Of a stretch of 54,887 nucleotides of DNA, positions 2,372 to 49,442 are shown one piece after another. Source of the stretch: Octopus bimaculoides. Taxonomy: Eukaryota. Position numbers and translations under genes: made by a program. How positions within the stretch are numbered: position 1 is the first letter of the stretch; the number at the start of each line of letters is the position of its first letter. Under the pieces are notes generated by a model. It was not told the origin of the DNA and did not search any database. It saw only the letters and a program-made list of their open reading frames with translations. The stretch is taken from contig NC_069008.1 in NCBI RefSeq assembly GCF_001194135.2, forward strand, positions 11,627,427 through 11,682,313. Direction: 5' to 3'.

Positions 2372-3898
2372 ATCTAAAAGTATGGGTCAGACAAAGACAA
2401 ACATTCATATATTAGTAAGTGCAATGAGTTTATTAGATGACCATGACTTCAGTAGATTCTGTCCCACCAGGTCACAGAGGGGAAGACCACCCACCATCAC
2501 TTCAGCAGTGAAGAAAAGCTCCATAGAGCGCTGGAGTGGCTGGACCGCACCCACCTAAAACCCTAAGAACAACATCAGGTGAAAGAAATGATTGCACATG
2601 CAATAGGGGCCAGTGTAAAAAACCACCTTGAAGAACCACATAGTAAAGTTTTGCAAAAAACTCTACATGCAGGTTCAAGGTGCAGCCATCGGTGTCGGTG
2701 TAGCCGGAGATGTGACTGACCTCTTTATGACCTGGTGGGACAGAAGACTTAAACAAATGTTAGCAGAACAGTCCACAACTCTTCTACTCTACAGTAGATA
2801 TGTAGATGACATTATTATCAGAGTTAGGACCAACTCCAGTGACGGTAATGTAGAAACTGAGAAGAACGTAATGGAGAGCATCCAGCAAATAGCTAACTCC
2901 ACCAAAGTATCAAGGTAACTATAGATTACCCCACTAAGCACCCCAACAATAGACTCCCTGTACTTGATACTGAACTTTGGTTTGAAACTGTGAACAATAA
3001 AGTGCAGCTCCTCCACTCCTATTACATGAAACCCATAACTTCAAAATATGTTGTTTACAAGAACTCAGCTTTGTCACACAACATTAAAATTAACATACTG
3101 ATAGCAGACTTAGTTAGGATAATGAACAATGTGTCCCCACTATGCAAACCCTATGAAACGAAAAAAACATATACAGAACTTCATGCACCGCATGCAGTTC
3201 TCTGGATATGATTAGAAAGTTAAGTTTCGAGTATACAGAGGGCTAGAAATAAATTAGATAACATTATACGTAATGATACCAGTGGTACCTGCCCTAGATA
3301 TAGAAACAAAGAATGAAATAGGATACAAAGAACTTGTGACAAAGCAAACAGGGCGAACACATGGTATAAAACCGACAAATATCAAAGAGTGATGTTTGTA
3401 GAGGCCACAGCCCATGGAGAACTAGCCCGTAGATTTAGAAAAGCTCTGAAGGAGACCAAACTCAACATTAAGATTGTTGAAAAGCCAGGGAACTCCGTCA
3501 GATCACAACTATGTAGGACGTACCTCTTTGAGAATACCATATGCACCAATGATAACTGCATGGTATGTAAGATTAGCCCTGGCATTAACTGTAGAACTAG
3601 AAATATAATTTACTGCATAAGCTGCATAGAAGGTGCTTGTAAAGACATGAACATGACGTACATAAGGGAGACATCTAGGAGCATTGCGGAACGACTAAAT
3701 GAACATCTGAGACAATATGACGACAAAAAACAGTCCCCCATACTCTACCAACATGCTAAAGACCAACATGGGGGCAACCTCGGTCAACTTGACATCCGCA
3801 TCTTATCCAAGCACCAAAAAGACCCAACACTCAGACAAATACGAGAGTACGTCCTTATAAATGAAACTTTCTCAATACTAAATAGGAAATATACATAG
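2372..3898 (+). mobile_element. Penelope-like element (RT + C-terminal GIY-YIG endonuclease), 5'-truncated and frameshifted
   Basis: RT motifs YMQVQGAAIGVGVAGDVTDLFM and LYSRYVDDII (2628-2918), thumb region YYMKP...SALSHNIK, and a Cys-rich linker followed by GIY-YIG-like IIYCISC...YIRETSRSIAERLNEH (3389-3898). Confidence 0.88.
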
Positions 3899-8561: not shown

Positions 8562-9287
8562 TAATGTTGTACTGCTAGGCATTCGCGCTGGAAACTCCAA
8601 AACGAACATTGCTGAGTGTTTGGGTTTCAATCTGAGGACAGGGCAATCTGAAGACATGTACATAGAGTGAGAAAAATCAAACATCTAGTCAACATCATGG
8701 TGTTTGGAGTGAGCACTAGTGATGGTGACGCTATGCCTCCATTCGTCTTCTCACACGACTTCAGACTCAACAAAGAGGCATACATCAAATGCCTGAAGGC
8801 AGCAGTGCTGCCCTGGGTCAAGAGAATGGCTGCTGGAAGAACCTATTTTCTGGCAACAAGATTCTGCAGCATGCTGCACAAGCAGGAGAACTCAGTTATT
8901 GCTGTCAGACAATTTTTGCGACCACATCACTCCTAAAATCTGGCCACCTAACTCCCCAGACTGCCACCGCCTTGATTATTATGCGTGAGTCGCAATTGAC
9001 CGAGAGACCAACAAAACTCTTTGTAGCACCAAAGATAAACTGAAGGCGAGGATTATGGCAGCACTCACCAACTTAAACAAGGAGACCATCCAGAAGAGTT
9101 GCAAAGATTCCGAAGTCTTCTGGAGACCGTGGTTGTAGCCAATGGTGATTTTATTGAAGAAATTAACTCTTTAGTATTTCAAGATATTTTTTATGTAATT
9201 TTGGCAAATATATCTGTTAAAATTACATATCAGCGTTATTTTCATTTTTGCATAATTTAGACGACAATATATGCACCGCACTCTGTA
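8562..9287 (+). mobile_element. Tc1/mariner superfamily (maT/DD37D-like) transposon remnant, internally deleted
   Basis: LLGIRAGNSKTNIAECLG, IMVFGVSTSDGDAMPPFVF, WQQDSA and IWPPNSPDC..LDY motifs; ends in ...CACTCTG|TA. Confidence 0.8.
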
Positions 9288-13973: not shown

Positions 13974-14134
13974 CTACGAAGTATGGACTCGTACAAAGTT
14001 TGAATTGTTTCCAAAGGAATTTCTGTCCACTCTTCAGCTAAAACAGTCTCCAATTCTTATAATGATGATGGGGGAGGATATCGTCTCTTGTTTCACTAAA
14101 ATACACCATAAATGCTCAATAACATTGAGATCTG
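13974..14134 (-). mobile_element. Tc1 transposase C-terminal fragment
   Basis: PDLNVIEHLWCIL...ETVLAEEWTEIPLETIQTLYESI; similar to 26130-26310. Confidence 0.85.
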
Positions 14135-14400
14135 ACAGAGATGGATTGAAGATATACATGAGTTGCGAAAGTCGTGTGTGCAACGCGAGACTTCGTACAG
14201 GTGAAAATTATAAAAAGCTTAAGAAGATTGAGATCCATAATCACGCTTCAACTGCTGCAGAGGTAAATGCAAGGATAATAGTTTCAAATATTAAAGTAAA
14301 GTCTGTTTCATCTCGTGATGCCCTTCACTCAATTATCGCTAGTGAAATTCAGAACTTAAATGACTGTACATTGTCGCAAACACCTCCACTTGCAAAGAAT
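14135..14400 (+). mobile_element. FLYWCH-like zinc-finger fragment, probably from a Mutator (MULE) transposase N-terminus
   Basis: GLKIYMSCESRVCNARLRT...IHNHA followed by RIIVSNIKVKS, resembling the Y[W]xC....CxAR...HNH pattern. Confidence 0.6.
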
Positions 14401-14409
14401 ACCACTTGG

Positions 14410-14716
14410 GTGGGGGGAGGAGCCGATGCTGATCTAGCCTTTTTCACTACATATTCCACTTCTTTCCAGGATGGACATCTGAGGTTGAATTTGTATACTG
14501 GTATTTCAGCTCTACCAGCATTTGGGTTAACATCAAGAGCTTCGTTTCTGAGGTCCTCATCATTGTGAGTCTCCATTAGAAACGATTCTACCTCTTCCTA
14601 GGAGCTGGTTAATTTCCCTGATTTGGGAAACAGTTCTTGACAAATTGCGCTTGTTTTGTTTCACTCTCTTTTCACCGCTTCCGGGTGCTTTCTGCCCTTC
14701 TAAGCCTTCGTAGACG
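14410..14716 (-). mobile_element. Non-LTR retrotransposon fragment (RLE-type, HERO/NeSL-like), just upstream of RT
   Basis: RLRRAE..RKR...ETHNDEDLRNEAL...PSWKEVEYVVKKARSASAP. Confidence 0.65.
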
Positions 14717-14911
14717 TTCATAGAGATCTAAATATACGTATATTTGTGTACAGTCACTTTTCTCACTTCGGTTTTAATCAATGTTATTGATTCATAATTA
14801 ATTGTCTCTCTCTTTTATCATCTGTTACACCTCTCTCCTTTTCACCAGCTCCCTTTCCAACTTTACATTCACTGTACTCTCTTCCTCATTCTCTATCTTT
14901 TGGGCGTACTC

Positions 14912-14914
<3 letters not shown>

Positions 14915-14974
<60 letters not shown>

Positions 14975-15100
14975 TGTCACTGCTCGGAATCGAATTCGGA
15001 ATCTTGGGGTTAGTAGCCCGCGCTCTTAACCACTACGCCATATGACCGTGGGCGAGTTCGATTCCAAGCAGAGACCTGAATAATATTAATAATAATAATG

Positions 15101-15150
<50 letters not shown>
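14915..15150. mobile_element. Two head-to-head short tRNA-derived SINEs with (AAT)n tails
   Basis: Minus-strand head at about 14975-15047 (A box TGGCGTAGTGG, B box GAATTCGATTCC) with an (ATT)n tail. The plus copy keeps only the B-box half (GAGTTCGATTCC, 15054-15065) and an (AAT)n tail. Confidence 0.8.
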
Positions 15151-15154
<4 letters not shown>

Positions 15155-15201
15155 TTGAAAAATACCTTAGGAATGAAAAACCAGTTTCGAAATTTCCCCA
15201 A

Positions 15202-15246
15202 GACACTTGAAGAAGGCTGGAGGGTATATCAGCCGAAACTTTGTGT
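15202..15246 (+). ncRNA. Degenerate minimal type I hammerhead ribozyme motif (PLE type) in a SINE-associated tail (15152-15300)
   Basis: Stem I ACAC/GTGT, core TTGAAGA + extra A (expected CTGANGA), 5-bp stem II GGCTG/CAGCC, GAAA, then C-T-T-T (expected ACGT palindrome). Confidence 0.6.
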
Positions 15247-15309
15247 ATCCGTCGAATGTAAATAATGTACATAATTCCTCATCTCTTAAATATAGAACTG
15301 TTCAACAAT

Positions 15310-17842
15310 AATAATTCCAACAGCAAGATAAACTCATTTTAAGCCACAACGAAGTGAACAGGACGACGCCAAAAAAGTGAATGCTTATGTTGAACAATCC
15401 ATGAATTTATTTGGCACCGAATGTATGGAGAAATTTAATTTATGGAAAATACCCATAAGCGCTTTGTGCAATAACGGAAACGGAACAGTCGAACGATCAA
15501 ACGAGGTTGACAAACTGAAACAAAAAATGAAAGAAACTTTCCCAAAAGTTTTTTTCGAAAAGTTTAGGCTGTTGCACAAAAGCAAAAGCAAGGATTGCTA
15601 TCAAAGAAAATTGAGCACCTATTTTCAAGCCTAAACAGAACGTGCCGTTTGCGGCGGTCGACCAGGTCAATAAAGAACTAGAAAGGTTGGAAAGCCTGAA
15701 TATAATTGAAAAGATTGACCATGCAGACTGGACAGTACCGGCAGTGTATGTAAAAAAAATAATAAATAAACTAAGCGTGTGCGCAAACTTCTCAACCGGT
15801 TTATGCACACATGATTACCCACTTCCAAGCCCAGGGGAAGTATTTACTAAACTAAACGGAGGGAATTTTTTTTAACATAAACCTCGCAGAGGCCTACCTT
15901 CAAACTGAGTTTGAGAAAGATTGCACGCATTTACTAAGAAACAACAAGCACCATGGACACCCGCCTTATTCCAACAAATAATGGATGCGATGTTAAGTGA
16001 TTGCGACTTCGGCATCGCATACCTAGATGACATTCTTTTGAAGAACTAGTCTCGGGTGCAACGTGTCGAACACATAAAGAAAGTATTCGAGTGAATAAGT
16101 GAAAAAAACTGACAGAAGTAAAATGCGATTTATTTATGAAAAAATAGAATAAAATACGACGAAAGTGGACGCATCGAGAGCGACGGCAATACGAAATATG
16201 CCAACCCCGACGAACGTGACAATGCTACAAGCATTCCCAGGCTTGGTAAATTATTACCAAGTGTACATACCAAATATACTTAAGGTAAGAGCACCACTTA
16301 ATGGATTCCTAAAAGAAAATGTCAAATAGATTTGGGCAGAGAAATGCCAGAAAACATTTAAAGAGTTAAAAGATGTGTTAAATGATGAGTTAAAGGATGT
16401 GTCAAACTTATATCTTACGCATTTCGACCCCAAGTTAGAAATAATACTAGCTTCAGGTGCTAGCGAGTATGGGGAAGGAACCGTGCTTCTACACAAGTAT
16501 AACGAGAGCAGGAGAAAGACTATAGCTCACACATCAAGGACATTATTGCCGGCGAAAAAGAGCTATAACCAGGTTGGAAAAGAGACTTTGGCCATTATAT
16601 TTGGCGTGAAAAAAATTCACAGGTTCATTCACAGCCGATGTTTTTGGCTGCAAACACACCATAGATCTCTACTAACAATATACGGATCCAAGAAAGGAAT
16701 CCCGACACATACGGCAAACAGACTGCAGCGGTGAGATGCCATTTTATTAAACTACAATTATAGAATGGAATATCTGCTTGAAAAAACGTTGGGACATGCC
16801 AATGGTCTGTTAATTCCGAGAAATAACGAACCGATGGAGGACACCGTAATAGTAATGCTAAGAGCGGAAACAGCAACAAAAAAAATGTGATGTGGAACGT
16901 CGTGCGTGAACTACCAATAACCTTTGAAGAAATATAAAGAAATGCAAGAAATGACAAATTTAATAAGAGACAAAAAGAAAACTGTGGTCGACGAAAAGGA
17001 AATAAAAAAAGATCTGATGCAAAGAACCGCCAAAATGTGAACGTATAGCAATACCACATACATACCAGAAGAGAATGCTAAAAGAGTTTCATGTGGGACA
17101 CTCAGGCATCTCTAGATTGAAAGCGCTGATGCGAAGTTTCGTACGCTGGTCAAACATGGATAAAGAAGTTGAAAACCTGATAAAAGGCTGCAGAGGATGT
17201 GCGCTGGCAGCGAAACTACCTACTACAAACTATGAATCTTGGCCGGAAGGGAGAATACCATGGTCTCGATTGCATATCGACTTGGCAGGTCCGGTAAATG
17301 GATATTATTATTTGATAATACTGGACAGCTACACAAATTGGCCTGAGGTCCTGAGGTGTAAACGACCAACCTCATATACAGTAATAAACTTCTTGCACGA
17401 GCTGTTCGCAAGATTTGCTGCACCGGATATAATTGTCTCTGTTAATGGAACACAGTTTCTATCCTGTAAGCTTTAAAGATTCTGCGAGATGTTACATTAG
17501 AACACCCTAAATCAAATGGAAGGGCTGAATGGTTCGTGGACACTTCCAAGAGAGTTTTAAAAAAACGCTGTAAGGAATCCACGGACGAGATCACAATCCA
17601 ACATTTCTTAAGTGTATACAGGGCAACTCCGAATCCAAATGCGGCAGAAGGAAGTTCACCAGCAGAATTAATGTTTGCCAGAAAGGTGAGGTCAGTATTC
17701 AATAAACTGTTACCAGTGAAGAAAAAAATACATGCTAAAAAAGCATGTCAAAATTCTTCAGATTCAGTGATAAGGTATATGTGAGAACGTACAAAATGGC
17801 AAGCAGTGCTGGAAAGATGGAGAAATTGTAACATACATAGGG
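15310..17842 (+). mobile_element. Ty3/Gypsy LTR retrotransposon pol (protease end, RT, RNase H, integrase), degenerate and 5'-truncated
   Basis: VPFAAVDQVNKELERLE, YPLPSP..VFTKLNGG, YLDDILL, LASGASEYGEG..KETLAIIFGVKK, HVGHSGISRLKALMRS..W..MDKEVE..CRGC, PWSRLHIDLAGP; many stops and frameshifts. Confidence 0.93.
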
Positions 17843-20201
17843 AGAACTTAGGAGGGCGAGTTCAAGAAAATGTGAAACCGCCCAGTGGTAAATGGGTAGG
17901 ACCGCTCAAGCAATCGCGTGGGTACTGAGTTCGCTGCTTCCCACCGAGGCGCCGTCGTTGCCGACGACCGCACTGCCGGCGGCCGCTTGTTCCGCAGACG
18001 GTCGTCCACTGCCTCATCAGCGTCCGATTTCCGGGGCACCGACATCGGACGCACTTCCCCTCTGATCCGTCGTCGCGACCTGTTCCCGTTGAGTTGTATG
18101 GCAGTGCACCTCCACTGCCGGCTTCGGCTGACCAGCGTCGAGACCGACACGCTTCTCTCGACCGGGCCCATCACCCCACGAAAGCGCAGGAACGGCTGAC
18201 CCACGGAGACGGGCTGACGCTCCTCACTATCAGCAAGCACGATGCAGCGAGTCGCGATGCCACGATGCCACGATGCAGCCGCCCGCGTGCTGCCTCGTTG
18301 CCTCCCNNNNNNNNNNNNNNNNNNNNNNNNNNNNNNNNNNNNNNNNNNNNNNNNNNNNNNNNNNNNNNNNNNNNNNNNNNNNNNNNNNNNNNNNNNNNNN
18401 NNNNNNNNNNNNNNNNNNNNNNNNNNNNNNNNNNNNNNNNNNNNNNNNNNNNNNNNNNNNNNNNNNNNNNNNNNNNNNNNNNNNNNNNNNNNNNNNNNNN
18501 NNNNNNNNNNNNNNNNNNNNNNNNNNNNNNNNNNNNNNNNNNNNNNNNNNNNNNNNNNNNNNNNNNNNNNNNNNNNNNNNNNNCACGTGGCGCTTCGAAG
18601 CATCGTTCCCGTGTTGTGTCCACGCGTTCGCGATCGCGTTTCCGCGCGTCTTCGCGTTTCCGAGCGTCTTCGCGTTCCCGCTCCGACTCAGGTGTAGCAG
18701 GTGGCCGGGGACCCGAAAGAGGGCGATCCACGCCTAGTCGGGACGAAGCTAGAGAAAACTCTGGTGGAAGTCCGAAGCGCATCTGACGTGCAAATCGATC
18801 GTTGAAACCGGGTGTGGGGGCAAAAGACCAATTGAGCCGTCTAATACCTGGTTCCCTCCGAAATTTCCCTCAGGACAGCTGGCGCCAACGGGAGAACGAC
18901 ACGCAATTCCGTCGGGTAAAGCAAACGACTGGAGGCCCCAGGTTCGTTGACAGCCGCGATCTACTCTCGAACTCAGAACGGGCGAAACGGGCCGCTCCTC
19001 TATCGATTAAAGGTGGCCGTATATCGCAGCCATTGCAACGAGACAAATGCACGGTGCCAAGTAGCTCACTTTTGGTAAGCAGAACTTGTGATGTAGGATG
19101 AACCGAACGTCCGGCTAAGTTGCCCCAAGCTTCGCCCATTAGATCCCCGAAAGGGAGTCGATCGATATAGACAGCAGACCGTGGCCACGGAAGTCGGAAT
19201 CCGCTCAGAAGTGTGTAACAACTTACTGCCAAATCGACCGGCCCCGAAAATAGATGGCGCTGAAGCGAGCGGTCGATGCCGAACCGGCCGGGCGGCAGGT
19301 TGCGCGATTACAGGCGAGGCTACTTTCCGATCCTCGGTAGAGTAGGAGGGCACCGCGGCGTGCATGGAAGCCGTGGGCGCGAGCCCGGATGAAACCGACC
19401 GTGGGTGCAGATCTCGGTGGTACTAGCAAATATCCGAACGAGACCTTCGAAGACAGAAGCGGAAAAGGGTTCCATGCCAACGGCGGTCGGGAACAGATCA
19501 GTCAGTTCTAAGAAGTGGGCGAAAGCTTTCACGAAAGGCGCCTGATCCGTCATTGTTGTTGTTGACAGTGCACGCACGCACGCACGCACGCAAGCGGCCG
19601 GCTTCGCTTCGAAAGGGAATCGGGTTAAAATTGCCCAACCCGAAATCGGAGAATTCCCGTCCGGCGGCGGGAACGCAGCGTGCTCCTAGCAGCGCGTCCA
19701 TCGTCGAAGCCGGCGCCCGGGCGAAGCAGCGGCAACTCAAGTGAGTCTGGAGATGTTGCCGGGAGCCCCGGGAAGAGTTCTCTCTTCTTCGTAAAGGACC
19801 GCACCCGTGGAGTAGGCTCCACCGGAGATACGGATATGATGCCTGTAGAGCGCCGCGCCTCAGGTGGTGTCCGGTTCGCTCTCGGAAGCCCTAGAAAATT
19901 CGGGTCCGAAACGATTCGCAGCTCTCGTATTCACCAACCATAGCAGGTCTCTAAGGTGTACAGCCTCACGTCGATAGCGCCAATGTACGTAAGGGAAGTC
20001 AGCAAAATGGATCCGTAACTTCGGAAGAAGGATTGGCTCCGAGGACCTGGTCGCTCGGGCCGTGTGTGTCGCTGTGCACCCGCGCGGCCGCGTTGCCGTT
20101 CGCTCGGCGTCACGCCACCAGGCGCCGGAACACGTCTTCACGCGAAGCGGCGGACCGGTACGGAGCTGTAGCGTTGGCGTCGGACTCGGCATTCCCTGGT
20201 G
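17843..20201 (+). pseudogene. 28S: 28S (LSU) rRNA fragment, from the D1/D2 boundary into D8, diverged, embedded in the Gypsy element
   Basis: Collinear LSU core motifs: GAGTTCAAG..GTGAAACCG (~17857), GGGACCCGAAAGA (~18708), CTGACGTGCAAATCGATCG (18783), GGTAAGCAGAAC (19074), GTGCAGATCT (~19405), CGAAAGGGAATCGGG (19610), GGATCCGTAACTTCGG (20009). There are many substitutions at normally conserved sites, and a gap at 18307-18583. Confidence 0.93.
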
Positions 20202-20670
20202 CCACGGACGAGATCGCGATCCAACAATTCTTAAGAGTTTACCGGTAACTCCGAACCCAAATGCAGCAGAAGGATGTTCACTGGCAGAATTAATGTTTGC
20301 CAGAAAGGTGAAGTCAGTATTCGATAAACTGTTACCAGTGAAGAAAAAAATACGTGCTAATAAAGACATGCCAAAATTCTTCAGAAACGGTAATAAGGTA
20401 CATTGTAAGAATGTGTAAAAATGGCAAGCAATACTTGAAGGGGAAATTGTAACAAACATAAGAAGCAGAAAAGGAATGGAAAGGAGACATAGAAATCAGT
20501 TTTAGGAAGGAGCCATAGAAAAGGAAACATCAGGAGTAGAAATACCGATGGTTTGGCTATATGACAATTTTCAGGTCCCAACACCGTTACAAGAAGTCGA
20601 AACAACACGTACAAGGAAAAGGAAGGATATTGAAACCCTAAAAGTAGACCCTAAGAAGAAAAGCTATTGA
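20202..20670 (+). mobile_element. Gypsy integrase C-terminus resuming after the 28S insert; the first ~260 bp duplicate 17579-17842
   Basis: TDEIAIQQFLRVYR.TPNP...AELMFARKVKSVFDKLLP, then WK.RHRNQ and ...KVDPKKKSY* (TGA at 20668-20670). Confidence 0.9.
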
Positions 20671-20678
20671 GTATGTAT

Positions 20679-20741
<63 letters not shown>

Positions 20742-20992
20742 GGTTGAATGTAAATTCGTCCTTTCTTTTGGAGCTTTCCAAAAGAGATTTCTAATGTTTG
20801 TTCTTCATACTTTGCTGGTTGTTTACAGGCGTAAATTTGCGAAGATATGAAAGTAACACTTGCATATAATGCACGGTGAATTTATGGAAAGAAGTCCCAT
20901 AAAATTCATCAATTTATTTAAAAATGAAGGAGACAAGTTGTTAAAATATATAAGAAGTTTAATAAATGATTAATACAAATTGGTTGTTAATT

Positions 20993-21185
20993 AAAAAGAA
21001 AAGTAAAAGGGGTGATTTTGTATAGTAAAATTGTACACCCCTCCCGGTAAAAAGTGGTAGTTGCCAGCCATTATAAATAGACCAGTAGCCGGTCGACAGA
21101 AGGTCGGAAGGTCGAGAATACGTGTAGATATCCGTGTCTGTCGGTATTGAAATTATACTTTGATAGTTAGTGGAAGTTTTATATC
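20993..21185 (+). mobile_element. Probable Gypsy polypurine tract and start of the 3' LTR, interrupted by a SINE
   Basis: AAAAAGAAAAGTAAAAGGGG (20993-21012) immediately followed by TG; TATAAATA at 21072-21079. Confidence 0.55.
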
Positions 21186-21393
21186 CTTTCTGCTGTAGGC
21201 ACAGGGCCTGAAATTTGGGGTAGGGTTCAGTCGATTAGATCAACCACAGTACGCAACTGGTTCTTAATTTATCGACCCCGAAAGGATGAAAGGCAAAGAC
21301 GACCTCGGTGGAATTTGAACTAAGGACGTAAAGACAGACGAAATACTACTTTGCATTTCGCTCGGCGTGCTAAAATTTCTGCTAGCTCGGCGC
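21185..21393 (-). mobile_element. tRNA-head SINE with a Nin/Deu-like core
   Basis: Minus strand reads GCGCCGAGCTAGCAG...TAGTTCAAATTCC...GCCTTTCATCCTTTCGGGGTCGATAAATTAAGAACCAG. Paralogs at 27300-27502, ~45810-45985 and ~48835-48942. Confidence 0.85.
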
Positions 21394-21587
21394 TTTGAGT
21401 GGACGTTATAGCGATCCAACCCTTTGAGGATTATAACACTGTACGACTGAGGGTTGTACAGTGCCAGAAAGAAACATTCTATCGGCGACTTCGAAATGTA
21501 ACGGTGGCAAAAGACCGCTATACAACACAATGATAATTTGAGACATTGTATGCGGAAAATATGTTAGAAGTGAATTTTAATACTTTC

Positions 21588-26037: not shown

Positions 26038-26476
26038 CAGGGGTTGAACAAAATAATGGAAACACCCTAAAATTTCAAACAAATATATTTTAATATGGGG
26101 TAGGACCGCCTTTTCAGTAATTACAGCTTGAATTCTATGAGGTATGAACTCGTACAAAGTTTGAATTGTTTCCAAAGGAATTTTTATCCATTCTTCAGCT
26201 AAAGCAGTCTCCAGTTCTTGTATTGATGATGGTGGAGGATATCAACTCCTTACTTGTTTTTCTAAAATGCACCATAAATGTTCAATAATATTGAGATCTG
26301 GGGACTGTGGTGGCCAGATAAGATGTTCCTTGAGGCATTCAGTAACAACTTTCACTGTGTGAATTAGTGCATTATCATCCTGAAAGATTGTGTTTCTCTC
26401 TGGAAACTGTTCCGCAACCATAGGATGAATTTGATCAGATAAAATGCTTAAATAGTCTTGACTATTAATTCTGCTT
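26038..26476 (-). mobile_element. Tc1 (DD34E) transposon 3' half with right TIR
   Basis: TA|CAGGGGTTGAACAAAATAATGGAAACACC TIR; IFQDDNA...WPPQSPDLNIIEHLW. Confidence 0.9.
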
Positions 26477-29400
26477 TGTTCCATCTCAGATGTTTTGCTA
26501 ATATTACAAACTGATGTTTCAATGCGAGCTATATTCGAGGGGAATTTGAAAGTAGAGTGAGTTGTTCTTCCTCCTGAGAGTAAAGTAGCAGCAATACCTG
26601 AAGAAACAACAGCCAAAGCTATTTTTTCTCTTGTCGTATTTTGGCAAGTAAAAGCTTAGCAACAAATGTTTTGCCAGTTCATGCAGATGCATCAAGAAAA
26701 GAAGACCCTCTCATTTGATCAAAAACTCTTTCTAGTATAGTATTGTAGTATACTTTTTATTCAAGCAACAATTTCAATTCATTTCCACTAACATATCTTG
26801 AGAAGTCTTCAATGTCATAGGAAGTCTCATTTAATAGATATGTTGTTAAACTATCGAGTTCAGAATGATTGGTATTAAGAAGTCCGTACTCAAGTAATTC
26901 ATTCCCTTTCATAGAAACAACTTCGTCTTTCAATGGCAATTAATGCGGCATTGTAGATTTCATCACTGTATTCTATTTTTGTACCAGGACATTGTAATCG
27001 AATCTAGTACTCGTAATCTTCCGCAAGATAATTTCTGTATCTAAGCCATATTGATCCTGGATCCCCTAATTCACAGTCTTTAAGGAGAATGCAAACAGTG
27101 TTCTTAAATTGCCTCCTGCGTAAGACAGAGAAGCCTCTGACATAGCAGCCATCCAATGACTATCATCTTATAATAAACCTAACCTAAAAGCTGCTTCTCT
27201 ATTCGAAGCACAAACATAACCATCAACAGTTCAGAGGTCGATAAAAGATGTGGGACCACGAATTTCATGGAGAAACAAATGCAAGTAAAAACATTCCTTA
27301 TTTCTTTACTGCCCACAGGGGCTAAACAAGGGATTAAGTCAATTACATCGACCCCGGTGCATAACTGGTAATTAATTCATCGACCCCGAAAGGATGAAAG
27401 GCAAAGTCGACCTCGGCGGAATTTGAACTCAGAACATAGTGGCAGACGAAATACTGCTAAGCATTTCACCCAGCGTGCTAACGTTTCTGCCAGCTCAACG
27501 CCTTAAAGTAAAAACATTCCTGCTGAGTTGGATGCACAGAACAAACTCTTCCCCGAACATTGTCAAATCGGATATCAGGATAACCACCAACCTCAGTGCC
27601 ACTTTTTCTGTGAGTCCATTGTTTGTTGTTCCATGTATAATATGACAGTAATTGAGAGTACAACAGGGTTTTAGCGAAAGATTCTTTCTGACAAAGTTTG
27701 AAAAATGCTGTTAATGTAGTTTCTCTTGGAGCTAGGGATTGCTGAGCAGCAGTTTCTGTTGTGAAATATATTCTTTGCCTATTCTCTAAATGAACAGAGA
27801 GTTGTTTCTCTGGAGGACATGGTTCGTGAGTAGGAAGTCAAATATTCTTCAGAAGGCCTCATTGCTACAAATATATCGCCCCATTTGGAAGTGTGTCACC
27901 TCTTCTTGAAATGTCTGTTGTTGAAGGGTAAACATGCCAAGATCTTTTTCACCAGCATTAGAACCCTTATTAACATATTTATAAATGTACTTCATTGACT
28001 TTATAGAATAACAATATTCTACATTTATGTATTCTTTGAATGTCTTAGACAAAGGAGGGCAGTAAAGCACTATCCACTGATTACCAATTGTATGGTGACC
28101 AATTTTTGTTCCAAAACCTCCATCTTGTGGTGCCCTTCTTCTGTATGATGGCTATCCATCATTATGTCCATTATTACGCATGTAAGTCATGGCATCTTGT
28201 GTCCTCTCGTGTATATATCTTGGGCTTCCTGTAAAACAAAAGGGGAAAATACAAAGTTGTCCAAGCCCTGTCCCAGCAATATCATTGTTAATGCTATCTC
28301 ATATATGCACATACGATTCTGAACATAGTTCTTTTTGGTGCATTTTCATGAAGCACAACTTCTCTGACTCTATTTTGGTATACATGTCAACAACATACTG
28401 GTGAATAAGATCTTGGCAATAGTGAAGATGATTAAACAAATTCAAATCATTAACTGATAATCATAACAATTCATACAGGATACAGTTCTTTTGGAAGTGA
28501 TTCCTCCAACTTTTATACCAAAATAGTATCCATCTTCTCTGTTAACAAGGGATATTATAATGCATCATATGAACGATGAATTTCATTTCTGAACGTGATG
28601 CTATTGTCACAATATTTCAGAAAAATATCTCATTTACCATGTTGTTCTCCAACCATAATAATTGCCACTTTATTACACTCAGGAACATTGAGTCAACGGA
28701 CATGTTCTCCTGCCGGTCTTTTGTTGGGGTTGATGACAACTTGAAAGTTTGCAGTTGAAGTACATTCTAAAACATACTGAAAGCTTCTCACATAAGAATT
28801 CTTTTCATGAAGCATTTCTTGCAGCTTAAAAATAAGTTCTAATCTTGAACCTGGACAATTCTTGTTGCAACACTGTGCTTCCTTTTGAACGTCACCTATA
28901 AAATATATTTGTAAAAATTGTGGATCTTTATTCTGTAAAGGCTTAAGAGAGCCAATTTTGTGATAAATTTGTCCTTACACTTTAAAAGTTGGCATAAATT
29001 CACTTAATTTTTGCCCCAAAATGATGTCAGTTGAAAAGCACAATTGTATGCTCAAATAGTTTTTTTAGGAAAGTGTCTTGATTCTGAAGTGGTACCCAAA
29101 AGATGTTTTATAAGTTCTGATGGCTCAATTATTGGTAAAAGGACCTTACCTTTAGAACAACACACACCTAATGATTCCTTGTTCCACTTCCTAGCACCAC
29201 ACTTTTCACATAGGGCCCAGGGAGACAATTTTTTCAGGTGCATAATTACGATTAGGATCATAATTAAATGCTACACCTTGCCGTTGAAATCATCCATACT
29301 TTTTCTGCTGATTTCTCTGGAAAGCTTTCTCCTTTTTGGTTGCTTTCACTTTCATTTTCTATTTATTTTACATTTTTCTCTTCTTTTTTGCAATTGTACT

Positions 29401-31735: not shown

Positions 31736-33013
31736 TCAAGTGTGAATCCTTTTGTGTTTTGTTAGGTCACTGCTCGAGACAAAAGATTTGCCACAGATGT
31801 CACAGTGATAAGGTTTTTCTTTAGAGTGTATTCTTTTGTGTATCTTTAAAGCACTGTTGGTAGCAAACAATTTTCCACATATTTCACAATGGTAGGGCTT
31901 CTCTCCAGTGTGACTACGTTTGTGAACTACAAGACTAGAATTAACTGAAAAAGATTTTCCACACATTTCACAATGATAGGGTTTCTCTCCAGTGTGGGTT
32001 CTTCTATGTTTTGTTAAGTCACTATTAGTGGTGAATAGTTTGCCACATATTTCACAGTGATACGGTTTCTCTCCAATGTGACTACGTTTGTGAACAACAA
32101 GACTCGAATTCACAGAGAATGATTTTCCACATATTTCACAATAACACACACTTTCTCCAGTGTGACAACTTTTGTGTTTTGTTAAGTCACTGCTATACAT
32201 AAACGACTTCCCGCATAATTCACAATGGTGGGGTCTCTCACCAGTGTGGATTCTTTTATGAACTACACGGCTAGAATTATCTGAGAATGATTTCCCACAA
32301 ATTTCACAATGATACGGTTTCTCTCCTGTGTGAGTACGTTTGTGAACAACAAGACTAGAATTATCAGCAAAAGGTTTCCCACATATTTCACAGTTGTAAG
32401 GTTTTTCTCCAGTATGTATTCTTTTGTGTTTGTATAAATCACTGTTAGAAACATAGTGTTTCCCACATATTTCACAATGATACGGTTTTTCCCCAGTGTG
32501 TCTTTGAATGTGGAGAGCAAGGTAAGCTTCCTGAGAGAACATTTTCTCACATATTTCACAATGATATGCTTTTTCTCCAGTGTGTATTACTTTATGATTT
32601 GCTAAATTTCTATTAGAGACAAAAGACTTCCCACAAATTTCACAATTAAAACGTTTCTCTCCAGTGTGGATTCGTTTGTGTTTTGTTAAATCACTGTTGT
32701 TGAGAAAATATTTCTCACAAATTTCACAGTAAAACTGTTTTTCTCCAGCGTGAATTCTTTTGTGTTTTCTCAAAGCATTGTTACTGACAAAAGCTTTCTC
32801 ACATGCATCACAATGATGGGGCATTTTCTTACTATGTATTTCTTTGTGCATGAAGACTTCATGTTCTGAAGAAAATATCTTCTTACAACTTTCACAGTGA
32901 TATTCAGGAACATTTTTGTCTACAAGTTTCTCATTTCTATCAGTCTGTGTAACTGTATCTATATTGGCAAAAGCAGTTGTGTTAGAAATGTCAGAGTGAT
33001 AAATATCCTCCAT
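31736..33013 (-). CDS. C2H2 zinc-finger protein, 425 aa, 14 tandem fingers, single coding exon
   Basis: Intact ORF with 14 CxxC...HxxxH units and mostly TGEKP-type linkers; upstream acceptor ttttcttttacAG at about 33360; possible 5' UTR exon 33801-34003. Confidence 0.93.
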   Translation of the reverse strand: MEDIYHSDISNTTAFANIDTVTQTDRNEKLVDKNVPEYHCESCKKIFSSEHEVFMHKEIHSKKMPHHCDACEKAFVSNNALRKHKRIHAGEKQFYCEICEKYFLNNSDLTKHKRIHTGEKRFNCEICGKSFVSNRNLANHKVIHTGEKAYHCEICEKMFSQEAYLALHIQRHTGEKPYHCEICGKHYVSNSDLYKHKRIHTGEKPYNCEICGKPFADNSSLVVHKRTHTGEKPYHCEICGKSFSDNSSRVVHKRIHTGERPHHCELCGKSFMYSSDLTKHKSCHTGESVCYCEICGKSFSVNSSLVVHKRSHIGEKPYHCEICGKLFTTNSDLTKHRRTHTGEKPYHCEMCGKSFSVNSSLVVHKRSHTGEKPYHCEICGKLFATNSALKIHKRIHSKEKPYHCDICGKSFVSSSDLTKHKRIHT

Positions 33014-46586: not shown

Positions 46587-48101
46587 TCACACATCATGAT
46601 GAACACTGATATGTCTATTTAGATGACACTTGACAGCAAATGATTTACCACACACATCACAGTGGAATGGCTTCTCTCCTGTATGTATACGTTTATGAGA
46701 TGTGACCTGACCAGCTCGACAGAATGATTTACCACAGATATCACAGTGATATGGTTTCTCTCCTGTATGGAGACGTTTATGAGTAGCTAAGCTACCCCAC
46801 TCAGAGAATGATTTACCACAGATATCACAGTGATGTGGCTTCTCTCCTGTATGAATGTGTTTATGTCTAGTTAAGGCACTATTTATAGAGAATGATTTAC
46901 CACAGATATCACAGTGATATGGCTTCTCTCCTGTATGAATACGTGTGTGAGTAGTTAAATGACTATTTAGAGAGAATGATTTACCACAGATATCACAGTG
47001 ATATGGCTTCTCTCCTGTATGAATACGTCTGTGAGTAGTTAACTGACTACTTTCAGAGAATGAATTACCACAAATATCACAGTTATGTGGTTTCTCTCCT
47101 GTATGAATATGTCTGTGTACAGTTAATTTACTATTCGTAGAGAATGATTTACCACAGATATCACAGTTATATGGTTTCTCTCCTGTATGAATGCGTTTGT
47201 GAATAGTTAAGCTACTACTTTGAGAGAATGATTTACCACAGATATCACAGTGGTATGGCTTCTCTCCTGTATGAATACGTGTGTGAATAGTTAAATTACT
47301 ACTTAGAGAGAATGATTTACCACAGATAGCACAGTGATATGGCTTCTCTCCTGTATGAATACATTTGTGTACAGCTAACATACCATTCCGAGAGAATGAT
47401 TTACCACAGATATCACATTGATATGGTTTCTCTCCTGTATGAATACGTCTGTGAGTAGTTAACTGACTACTTTCAGAGAATGATTTACCACAAACATCAC
47501 AGTTATGTGGTTTCTCTCCTGTATGAATATATCTGTGTACAGTTAATTTACTATTCGTACAGAATGATTTACCACAGATATCACAGTTATATGGCTTCTC
47601 TCCTGTATGAATGCGTCTGTGACTAGTTAAGTGACTACTTTCAGAGAATGATTTACCACAAATATCACAGTGATATGGCTTCTCTCCAGTATGAATACGT
47701 CTGTGACTAGTTAATTGACTACTTCCAGAGAATGATTTATCACAAATATCACAGTGATATGGCTTCTCTCCAGTATGAATACGTCTGTGACTACTTAATT
47801 GACTACTTCCAGAGAATGATTTACCACAGATATCACAGTGATATGGCTTCTCTCCTGTATGAATACGTCTGTGAGTAGTTAACTGACTACTTTCAGAGAA
47901 TGAATTACCACAAATATCACAGTTATGTGGTTTCTCTCCTGTATGAATACGTCTGTGTACAGTTAATTGACTATATGTACAGAATGATTTACCGCAGATA
48001 ACACAGTGATATGGCTTTTCTCCTGTATGAGTACGTCTGTGAGTAGTTAATTGACTACTTACAGAGAATGTTTTACCACAGATATCACAGTTATGTGGCA
48101 T
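46587..48101 (-). CDS. C2H2 zinc-finger ORF, 504 aa, 18 tandem fingers; the ancestral N-terminus (ATG 48276) is out of frame
   Basis: 18 uninterrupted 28-aa units with TGEKP linkers; AATAAA about 30 nt after the stop (46552-46557); acceptor ttttctttttatttcAG at 48568-48569; one more finger lies in frame upstream (48173-48102). Confidence 0.88.
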
Positions 48102-49442
48102 CTCTCCTGTATGAACACGTCTGTGAGTTGCTAAGTTACTTTTATGAGAGAATGACCTTTTACAAATATCACAGATATAATATTTTCCCTTTCACTTTCT
48201 TAATATAATTGGGGAAATTTATTCTTTGCCACTGTGTATTATATTGGACCTTGTTTTCATGTATTTCATTTTCCATTATTCTTTATCTCTTTCTCTACAA
48301 TATAGAGATTTCTTTGCTTCTGCTATATTTCCATCAACTGTAATCTTGATTAATATTTGAATATACTGCAAACTCCTTTGTAATCCAATTTTAATTTGAA
48401 TATGAAATCATCTTGTACACATTCTAGACAGAGAAGCCAGGAAATTCTGCTGTTAACCTCAACTATTTGATGGTAATGTTTTCCATAGAGTCTTTCTGTC
48501 TTTAAAGGATGATAAATATTGATGGATCTCAGGTAAATAATTCTTTTATGGCAACATCATCTATATTCTGAAATAAAAAGAAAACAAATATAAAATATAG
48601 GGGATATCTATATAAAAACTAGACATTTTACTACATTTCTCTTAACTTTTATTTGTTTCAGATTTTTGGCATAAACTTAAAAGTAGCATTTCAATTTAAC
48701 AACCTGAAAAGGGTGAAAGACAAACCTAATCTCCAATGAGGTGTGCAAAGAGAGAGAAAAAATGCTGTCAAGCATTTTATCTGATGGACTAAGGATTCCA
48801 ACTGCTCCCCACCTTAAGAATAATGAAAAATCCTTTCTAATATAGGCACAAGGCCTGAAAATCAGGGGATGGGGATAGTTAATTATATTGACCCCAGTAC
48901 TTAGCTGGTACTTATTTTTATAGATCTCAAAAGGATGAAAGGCTTAAGCACCCCTTTAAAACCCTTCATAACTAATTTTCTTTTTTTTTTTGTAATTTTC
49001 AGAAAACTTTTGTGAATTTGTGTTCTACACACGGGAATTCGTGTGATTATAACAAAAAACAGTTTCTTTTAAATTCGACTTTTTTAATTTTGGAAATCTT
49101 TTGAAATCCAAGTTCGCAATGTTAAAAATATTCACACATATGCACGGCCTATTATGGATTCTGGACCCATGATTAGTTACATGTACCTCATGTAACTAAT
49201 CATAACGCTTGTTGGCATTTTCAGAATTATTTAATGAATTTGTGCTCTACACACTGGACCTCGTACAAATGTGCAAAATAAATATTTTTCAATTAAAATT
49301 TTCTCATTCCTCATCCTACCCAATAATCCTTATGGATACTCAAATTAGACTTAACCCACATCAATCACATAGGCATTGGAGAGTCTGAGATAATTGCTGG
49401 GATTTATCCATAGGGATTTAAAAAAGGGTATATTCCTTTATT

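Follow-up and report, generated by a model that had tools for sequence, protein, structure and literature searches.

How did 2.36 kb of 28S ribosomal RNA (rRNA) sequence come to lie inside the integrase gene of a retrotransposon? The question is raised by a stretch of 54,887 nucleotides of the Octopus bimaculoides genome (assembly GCF_001194135.2, contig NC_069008.1, positions 11,627,427 to 11,682,313 of the forward strand; hereafter the window), in which a degraded Ty3/Gypsy element on the plus strand is interrupted by a sense piece of 28S rRNA, with the same integrase segment present on both sides of that piece. An original prediction had proposed that the rRNA was captured through template switching by a reverse transcriptase (RT). 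Our analyses indicate that the locus is an old, decayed, single-locus chimaera of a Gypsy relic and 28S rRNA, most likely of the retroelement/rRNA template-switch class. The insert disrupts the C-terminal domain of the integrase.

The junctions were fixed by alignment to two references. One is a locus of O. sinensis (L001), reached via the protein P0012, which carries an insert-free relative of the same Gypsy family, devoid of rRNA. The other is the true 28S of O. vulgaris, taken from a ribosomal DNA (rDNA) locus (L003) with a complete 18S-5.8S-28S unit. The latter was found through an antisense open reading frame (ORF) that spans the right junction; its match is an O. vulgaris 'hypothetical protein' that is actually an ORF in rDNA. 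Homology of the Gypsy sequence to L001 stops at 17846 and restarts at 20201/20202, 268 nt upstream of its stopping point. This alignment slightly corrects the boundaries of the interrupted plus-strand pol, resuming upstream, that had been described initially.

At the left joint, a three-way alignment shows Gypsy GGAAGAA|TGATG meeting 28S GAAAAGAA|CTTTGG. The two share the 4-5 nt microhomology AGAA (17843-17846, plus strand), extended to AAGAA where the sequences have not decayed. On the right, 28S ...GGTGC|GCTCC meets Gypsy ...GGAAGC|CACAG, with a microhomology of 1-2 nt, GC (20201-20202, plus strand). The original prediction had called for the true 28S to be used in this manner to look for microhomology, and both joints have it. 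Neither contains filler bases, and both lie within contigs, away from any gap, as had been stated.

The sense 28S reported between the two Gypsy pieces was borne out by independent means. In Rfam searches, the LSU_rRNA_eukarya model matched the plus strand with 637-655 bits, the segment 18686-19972 being retained at the gathering threshold. With permissive settings, the match starts at about model position 370, around window position 17840. It is the single large-subunit match in the 54.9-kb window, in which Rfam found no small-subunit (SSU) or 5.8S match. The insert is a contiguous piece of 28S that runs, colinear with the true O. vulgaris sequence, from GAAAAGAAC just 5' of the expansion segment D2 and ends inside D8. 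Its 5' part (17847-18306, plus strand) comprises the conserved core just 5' of D2 and the 5' half of D2. Its 3' part (18584-20202, plus strand), supported by Rfam, alignment, rates of change and their polarity, begins in the last part of D2, crosses the core domains and D7, and finishes within D8. The insert is thus wholly within mature 28S, and both the internal transcribed and the intergenic spacers are absent; an internal fragment of rDNA would look identical.

Is this insert a genuine resident of the genome, and how old is it? The core differs from the O. vulgaris 28S at 139 of 1459 aligned positions (9.5%). The D2 part on the left of the gap described below diverges by 14-18%, which is expected because D2 is a fast-evolving expansion segment compared here between species. 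The rates of decay depend on the class of site, with 13.9% for CpG, 10.4% for other G/C and 5.1% for A/T positions, and the changes show a GC-to-AT bias, G>A and C>T being predominant. We also made a three-way comparison over 586 sites of the window, O. vulgaris and a second octopod-like 28S from a metagenome contig (L004). It yielded 53 changes private to the window against two private to O. vulgaris, and therefore the changes fall on the lineage of the window. We conclude that the insert is an old and genuine pseudogene of the genome, located outside an rDNA unit and freed of the constraints on functional rRNA.

Two further features of the 28S sequences were noted. The D7a loop of the insert (19557-19597) reads (GTT)3...(ACGC)5 and is unrelated to the AU-rich D7a of O. 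vulgaris, and its start resembles the (GTT)n D7a of L004. We considered this loop as a means to discriminate between an RNA and a DNA template, but it is hypervariable and we drew no inference from it. In the O. vulgaris reference (OX597833.1; L003 7840-13304, minus strand), the 28S gene is 5465 nt long owing to an internal direct duplication of 575 nt (positions 1356-1930 and 1931-2505 of the 28S), whose first 521 nt are identical, the ~54 nt that follow being unrelated. Either this rDNA unit is aberrant or the assembly is in error here; the duplication is absent from the insert of the window.

The insert is interrupted by a gap of 277 N (18307-18583) within D2, one of nine N-runs of varied estimated lengths in the assembly of the window. 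The gap stands for the 3' part of D2 and the conserved ACCCGTCTTGAAACACGG core. A deletion of the ACCCGUCUUGAAACACGG core, suggested by the Rfam alignment, was rejected, as the alignment to the true 28S places this stretch in the gap. The sequences that flank the gap have the same orientation, order and register on the true 28S. The 28S sequence lacking between them amounts to ~227 nt when the contig ends are aligned locally and to 275 nt in the global alignment, versus 277 N. The original prediction had singled out this gap as a point to be confirmed with long reads or PCR. Its flanks proved colinear in 28S and its length fits; this colinearity gives good support to continuity across it.

The arrangement might nevertheless be an artefact of assembly or scaffolding, in which the contigs flanking the gap come from different loci or reads of rDNA were wrongly joined to those of Gypsy. 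The assembly is based on short reads with estimated gaps, and this gap sits in GC-rich, repeat-related sequence. We nonetheless regard such an artefact as very improbable. Each junction is inside a contig, and the orientation, register and gap length match one colinear 28S. On either side of the gap, the 28S shows decay of the pseudogene type and differs by 9-16% from functional 28S, and therefore the insert is not contamination by rDNA reads. Moreover, the Gypsy pieces to the left and right of the insert are most closely related to one another, and two unrelated loci that each join the integrase region of this Gypsy element to 28S would be a larger coincidence.

The duplicated segment provides a second record of the event. 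The left copy of the C-terminal stretch of the integrase (17579-17846, plus strand; 268 nt) corresponds to L001 32056-32326, and the right copy spans 20202-20465 on the plus strand. They differ by 34 mismatches at 261 ungapped sites (87% identity, within the 85-90% estimated initially) and by several indels, and both contain frameshifting indels. With L001 as the outgroup, 15 changes are private to the left copy and 18-19 to the right copy, and 19 derived states are common to both. When the rates of the insert for each class of base are applied to the inferred ancestral 261 nt, each copy is expected to have 19.1 private changes, which makes 38 for the pair, against the 34 observed. It follows that the copies formed as identical or nearly identical sequences, and since their decay matches the rates of the insert, the insert and both copies began to decay together. 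The captured rRNA, compared with its conserved source, thus serves as an internal clock that dates the event and shows that the duplicates were identical at their origin. Decay since the event has been neutral, at ~5-14% depending on the class of site, in the insert and both duplicates as in the remainder of the element.

These figures bear directly on the source of the two copies, which the original prediction had ascribed to two different Gypsy elements packaged together, the resulting chimaera, if it had multiplied, serving as a vehicle for rDNA orphons. Landing 3' of the site of departure does speak for a second RNA, and some of the differences between the left and right copies are synonymous, which had been taken as a sign of two elements. 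However, decay after the event is sufficient by itself to account for the number of differences, their split between the copies is near-symmetric, and the two copies have 19 derived states in common when compared with O. sinensis. A Nei-Gojobori analysis counted 10 synonymous and 23 non-synonymous differences, with a dN/dS of 0.56 that is not significantly below 1; the surplus of synonymous changes does not reach significance (p=0.13), and both copies are frameshifted. The differences are thus of the neutral kind that had been named at the outset as the outcome that would go against two source elements. In addition, neither junction was found again in the searchable data. We consider it highly improbable that two distinct elements contributed and that their product then multiplied. 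Two source elements are not needed, and the data are compatible with a second RNA of the same sequence.

What kind of element received the insert? A three-frame translation of 14200-17900 contains the Pfam domains of a Ty3/Gypsy pol on the plus strand in the order RT, RNase H and integrase (15957-17488). RVT_1 (~15957-16109) is a weak match below the cutoff, RT_RNaseH/RT_RNaseH_2 (16333-16755) and the integrase zinc domain Integrase_H2C2 (17051-17209) are above it, and the integrase core rve (17294-17488) is below it. The domains are scattered across three frames, with numerous stops and frameshifts. The degraded, 5'-truncated pol, recognized by Pfam, by protein homologues and by DNA homology to L001 from 15371 onwards, spans 15371-17846 on the plus strand, the integrase C-terminal part of this left piece reaching 17846; the onset of Gypsy-like sequence may be near 15310. 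Its closest protein relatives are the 'K02A2.6-like' retroelement proteins of O. bimaculoides and O. sinensis.

On the other side of the insert, the right integrase copy is followed by the rest of the integrase C-terminus (20466-20670, plus strand), up to the pol stop codon TGA (20668-20670). A (GT)n tract and ~250 nt come next, and then a polypurine tract, AAAAAGAAAAGTAAAAGGGG (20993-21012, plus strand), conserved in L001. A candidate 3' long terminal repeat (LTR) that begins with TG extends on the plus strand from 21013 to ~21182, with conservation in L001 up to ~21104; it is broken at 21183 by an antisense repeat resembling a short interspersed nuclear element (SINE). The continuation to a pol stop, a polypurine tract and an LTR start had been noticed from the outset, and the latter two elements are supported by conservation.

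The other parts of a complete element were not found. No direct repeats that could represent an LTR pair bracket the relic, for which we have the start of the 3' LTR only. Pfam gave no match to protease or gag 5' of the RT in the translated region, and nothing in the window matches the gag-like zinc-knuckle ORF of L001. Both ends of the relic are thus missing or interrupted, and a target-site duplication cannot be read. The relic is a dead, 5'-truncated and degraded Ty3/Gypsy element. As for the O. sinensis relative, its gag-like CCHC ORF lies at L001 30472-30903. In L001, an extra 2.4 kb separates pol from the polypurine tract. It corresponds to an insertion resembling a long interspersed nuclear element (LINE), with LINE-like reverse-transcriptase ORF fragments at L001 32788-34393, downstream of the pol stop.

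How could such a structure have formed? We tentatively favour, with a confidence just short of even, template switching by RT during minus-strand synthesis, from Gypsy RNA to 28S rRNA in D8 and back to Gypsy RNA. From the observed structure, the junctions and their microhomologies, the age of the locus and the original identity of the duplicates, we infer that the polymerase was an RT and that its templates were RNA. One ancient event would have placed the 28S piece in the region coding for the integrase C-terminus together with the 268-nt flanking duplication. RT would have copied Gypsy RNA from its 3' end to the position that is now 20202, jumped onto 28S rRNA in D8 via 1-2 nt of complementarity, copied 2.36 kb toward the 5' end of the 28S, and returned to Gypsy RNA at the AAGAA motif via 4-5 nt of complementarity. 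As it would have landed 268 nt 3' of its departure point, a 268-nt stretch would have been copied twice. The return was probably onto a second co-packaged RNA, because RNase H would degrade the first template once copied; this second RNA would have been the same in sequence as the first.

Several features of the locus are consistent with such switching by RT. The insert and pol are both on the plus strand, in the same sense as the transcript of the element. The insert also keeps within mature 28S, as an internal rDNA fragment would too. The joints are direct, devoid of filler, with short microhomology. The flanking direct duplication is the expected by-product of landing again 3' of the departure point, and the polypurine tract and the LTR start are kept downstream.

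The right copy contains one feature that complicates the picture. It has lost 21 nt (seven codons, in frame) between TAGGAAG and TAAGAAG repeats (20459-20465, plus strand), at the very position of the element where the left copy switches to 28S. Comparison with the proteins P0012, P0003 and P0019 shows that the deletion is a derived state. As there are just three indels of at least 4 nt in ~480 nt, the coincidence between deletion and junction would arise by chance with a probability of roughly 2-7%. The deletion may mark a preferred site of strand transfer or the site of a break. As the deletion and the left junction both depend on the same A/G-rich motif, they may not be independent of their sequence context.

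The same structure could also have arisen at the level of DNA, from a broken replication fork or double-strand break in an integrated Gypsy copy. Repair would then have proceeded by microhomology-mediated template switching of the type of microhomology-mediated break-induced replication (MMBIR) or fork stalling and template switching (FoSTeS). A 3' end finishing in ...GGAAGAA would have invaded, at AAAAGAA, either rDNA or an extrachromosomal circle of it and copied 2.36 kb, and a switch back to Gypsy 268 nt behind the break would have generated both the insertion and the flanking duplication. We hold this for a possible, if rather unlikely, origin. The filler-free microhomology at both joints agrees with it, as does the identity of the duplicates at formation, which is expected when a single DNA copy is read twice. 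There is also no sign that the chimaera moved, neither an LTR pair nor gag nor another copy having been found, and the 21-nt loss on the right side falls in the region of the supposed break point. However, a fork that re-invades should copy the site intact, and the deletion is then unexplained. Moreover, neither the sense orientation nor the confinement to mature 28S is required by a DNA-based process. A random 2.36-kb piece of rDNA would often include spacer or 18S, and the location within a retroelement would be a coincidence.

A third route combines a break with reverse transcription. At a break in a resident Gypsy copy, or in the course of LINE-type target-primed synthesis, a DNA 3' end would have been extended on a Gypsy transcript. 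Synthesis would then have switched to 28S rRNA, and the other end would have been joined by microhomology. The product would be a patch of 28S-Gypsy cDNA and not a transposed element. This would agree with the 5' truncation of the element, with the sense orientation and with the coincidence of the 21-nt deletion and the left junction. There are also precedents in chimaeras of 28S with LINE-1 and in multi-jump LINE chimaeras (PMC13174262, PMC2104539). However, neither a poly(A) tail nor a LINE 3' end nor a target-site duplication is present at the right end. The SINE-like repeat at 21183-21396 was considered as the primer of a LINE-type multi-jump chimaera and rejected, as it is antisense, so that it cannot have been the primer template, and as no poly(A) is present. 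Furthermore, a long homologous 3' tail should anneal at its cognate site and leave no deletion. We therefore judge this route to be clearly unlikely.

To return to template switching by RT on Gypsy and 28S RNAs, a number of points weigh against it. None of the features is proof of an RNA template. Replicative switching on rDNA, mediated by microhomology, would yield an identical product. The part of the original prediction that stands is thus a double non-homologous switch, which the architecture fits, while an origin at the DNA level fits as well. The match in sense between insert and element has a chance expectation of 50%. With no 5' LTR, gag, protease or readable target-site duplication, integration of a complete chimaeric cDNA is not demonstrated. 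The 21-nt deletion at the position of the left junction is predicted by no simple model. In addition, the continuity across the gap and both junctions rest on one assembly derived from short reads. Finally, the very limited data that could be searched did not contain either junction a second time.

Has the chimaera ever multiplied? The searches for further copies covered annotated or ORF-called proteins and JGI metagenomes. In protein searches, the antisense 199-residue ORF of the right junction matched true rDNA ORFs only, and a sense 202-residue junction query matched insert-free Gypsy proteins only. There are no exact matches on record to the right-junction ORFs, the integrase ORF or P0001. 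Pattern scans of JGI metagenome contigs for the two junctions were both empty, and they are uninformative. Within this scope, the chimaera appears to be single-copy. The suggestion that it was a route for spreading rDNA orphons finds no support in these data, in which neither junction recurs, nor in an element that has no 5' LTR, gag or protease. One could still imagine that the chimaera was made in a virus-like particle, integrated as a complete LTR element and mobilised in trans to give a small family of Gypsy-28S elements in octopuses, AAGAA being a preferred acceptor for RT that would explain both the left junction and the deletion. We find this scenario doubtful, with a low probability. 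If true, such a family would represent a route by which LTR retrotransposons disperse rDNA orphons.

The remainder of the window contains other repeats and genes. The SINE-like dispersed repeat occurs at 21183-21396, 27331-27504 and 48830-48943 of the window and at 9112-9269, 26082-26249 and 40960-41106 of L001, with 71-81% identity among copies and a B-box-like motif on the minus strand. Another pair of dispersed repeats, at 13974-14134 and 26135-26300, is 86-89% identical and lies at a distance on either side of the region; these are not the LTR pair of the relic because no Gypsy homology adjoins them. At 14914-15152, (ATT)n and (AAT)n tracts form inverted arms of 85 nt that enclose a short tRNA-like piece, in which ARAGORN detected no tRNA. 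A transposon-domain identity had been supposed for the ORFs at 3389-3898 and 14077-14568, and Pfam did not confirm it. Two intact ORFs on the minus strand, at 31736-33013 (425 residues) and 46587-48101 (504 residues), code for C2H2 zinc-finger proteins with multiple fingers and a periodicity of 84 nt; the former corresponds to the product of an annotated O. bimaculoides gene, with an exact coding match on chromosome record CM046628.1 of GCA_001194135.2. The annotated gene closest to the relic is a zinc-finger ORF at a distance of over 10 kb.

Where does this locus stand among known systems? Sense host sequences in LTR-type elements are found in acute transforming retroviruses and in the maize element Bs1, and they are thought to arise by non-homologous recombination of co-packaged RNAs. 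The joints of such retroviral or LTR transductions often carry deletions or duplications. In those cases the cargo is derived from mRNA and the element is mobile or multicopy, whereas the window has an rRNA cargo and one decayed, truncated copy. MMBIR and FoSTeS generate insertions of distant sequence together with local duplications, with 1-5 nt of microhomology per joint. They use DNA templates and have no constraint on orientation or transcript boundaries, and on present data they are indistinguishable from switching by RT.

Fragments of 28S outside the rDNA array that undergo decay, as in the window, are also known as rDNA orphons and rRNA retropseudogenes, a human 28S orphon and a retropseudogene being cited in PMC13174262. 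In the window, in contrast, the 28S is embedded precisely in the ORF of a retrotransposon, with a duplication of that ORF on both sides. As a single, inactive and old copy, the locus illustrates a mechanism rather than a demonstrated effect on genome function or on the dispersal of rDNA.

The closest parallels come from LINEs. Sense-biased chimaeras of 28S with LINE-1 have been described in mammals and ascribed to template switching, with inserts of 50-482 nt (PMC13174262). Like the chimaera in the window, they are sense fusions of rRNA with a retroelement, with filler-free joints, and are ascribed to a switch of RT to an abundant cellular RNA. In these non-LTR elements, the rRNA is at the 5' end of a 5'-truncated LINE, with poly(A) and a target-site duplication (PMC13174262). 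In contrast, the partner in the window is of the LTR type, and the 2.36-kb insert is internal and bracketed by a 268-nt duplication, which corresponds to two jumps. Double template jumps are known from the tripartite chimaeric retropseudogenes of Magnaporthe grisea, which formed during LINE reverse transcription (PMC2104539). They share with the proposed origin of the locus two successive switches and a three-part sense product. They are nevertheless the work of a LINE RT in target-primed synthesis on three different RNAs, whereas the first and third parts in the window belong to the same element and overlap by 268 nt. Also unlike a LINE-type chimaeric retropseudogene, the relic has no A-run at its right end, and the adjoining SINE-like repeat is antisense. 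The rRNA-retroelement chimaeras documented for LINEs are thus short and located at the 5' end. A kilobase-scale piece of rRNA in an LTR-type element, flanked by the kind of duplication that a double template jump leaves, would extend rRNA capture to LTR retroelements, in a cephalopod, and would be a concrete fossil of non-homologous recombination with the most abundant RNA of the cell.

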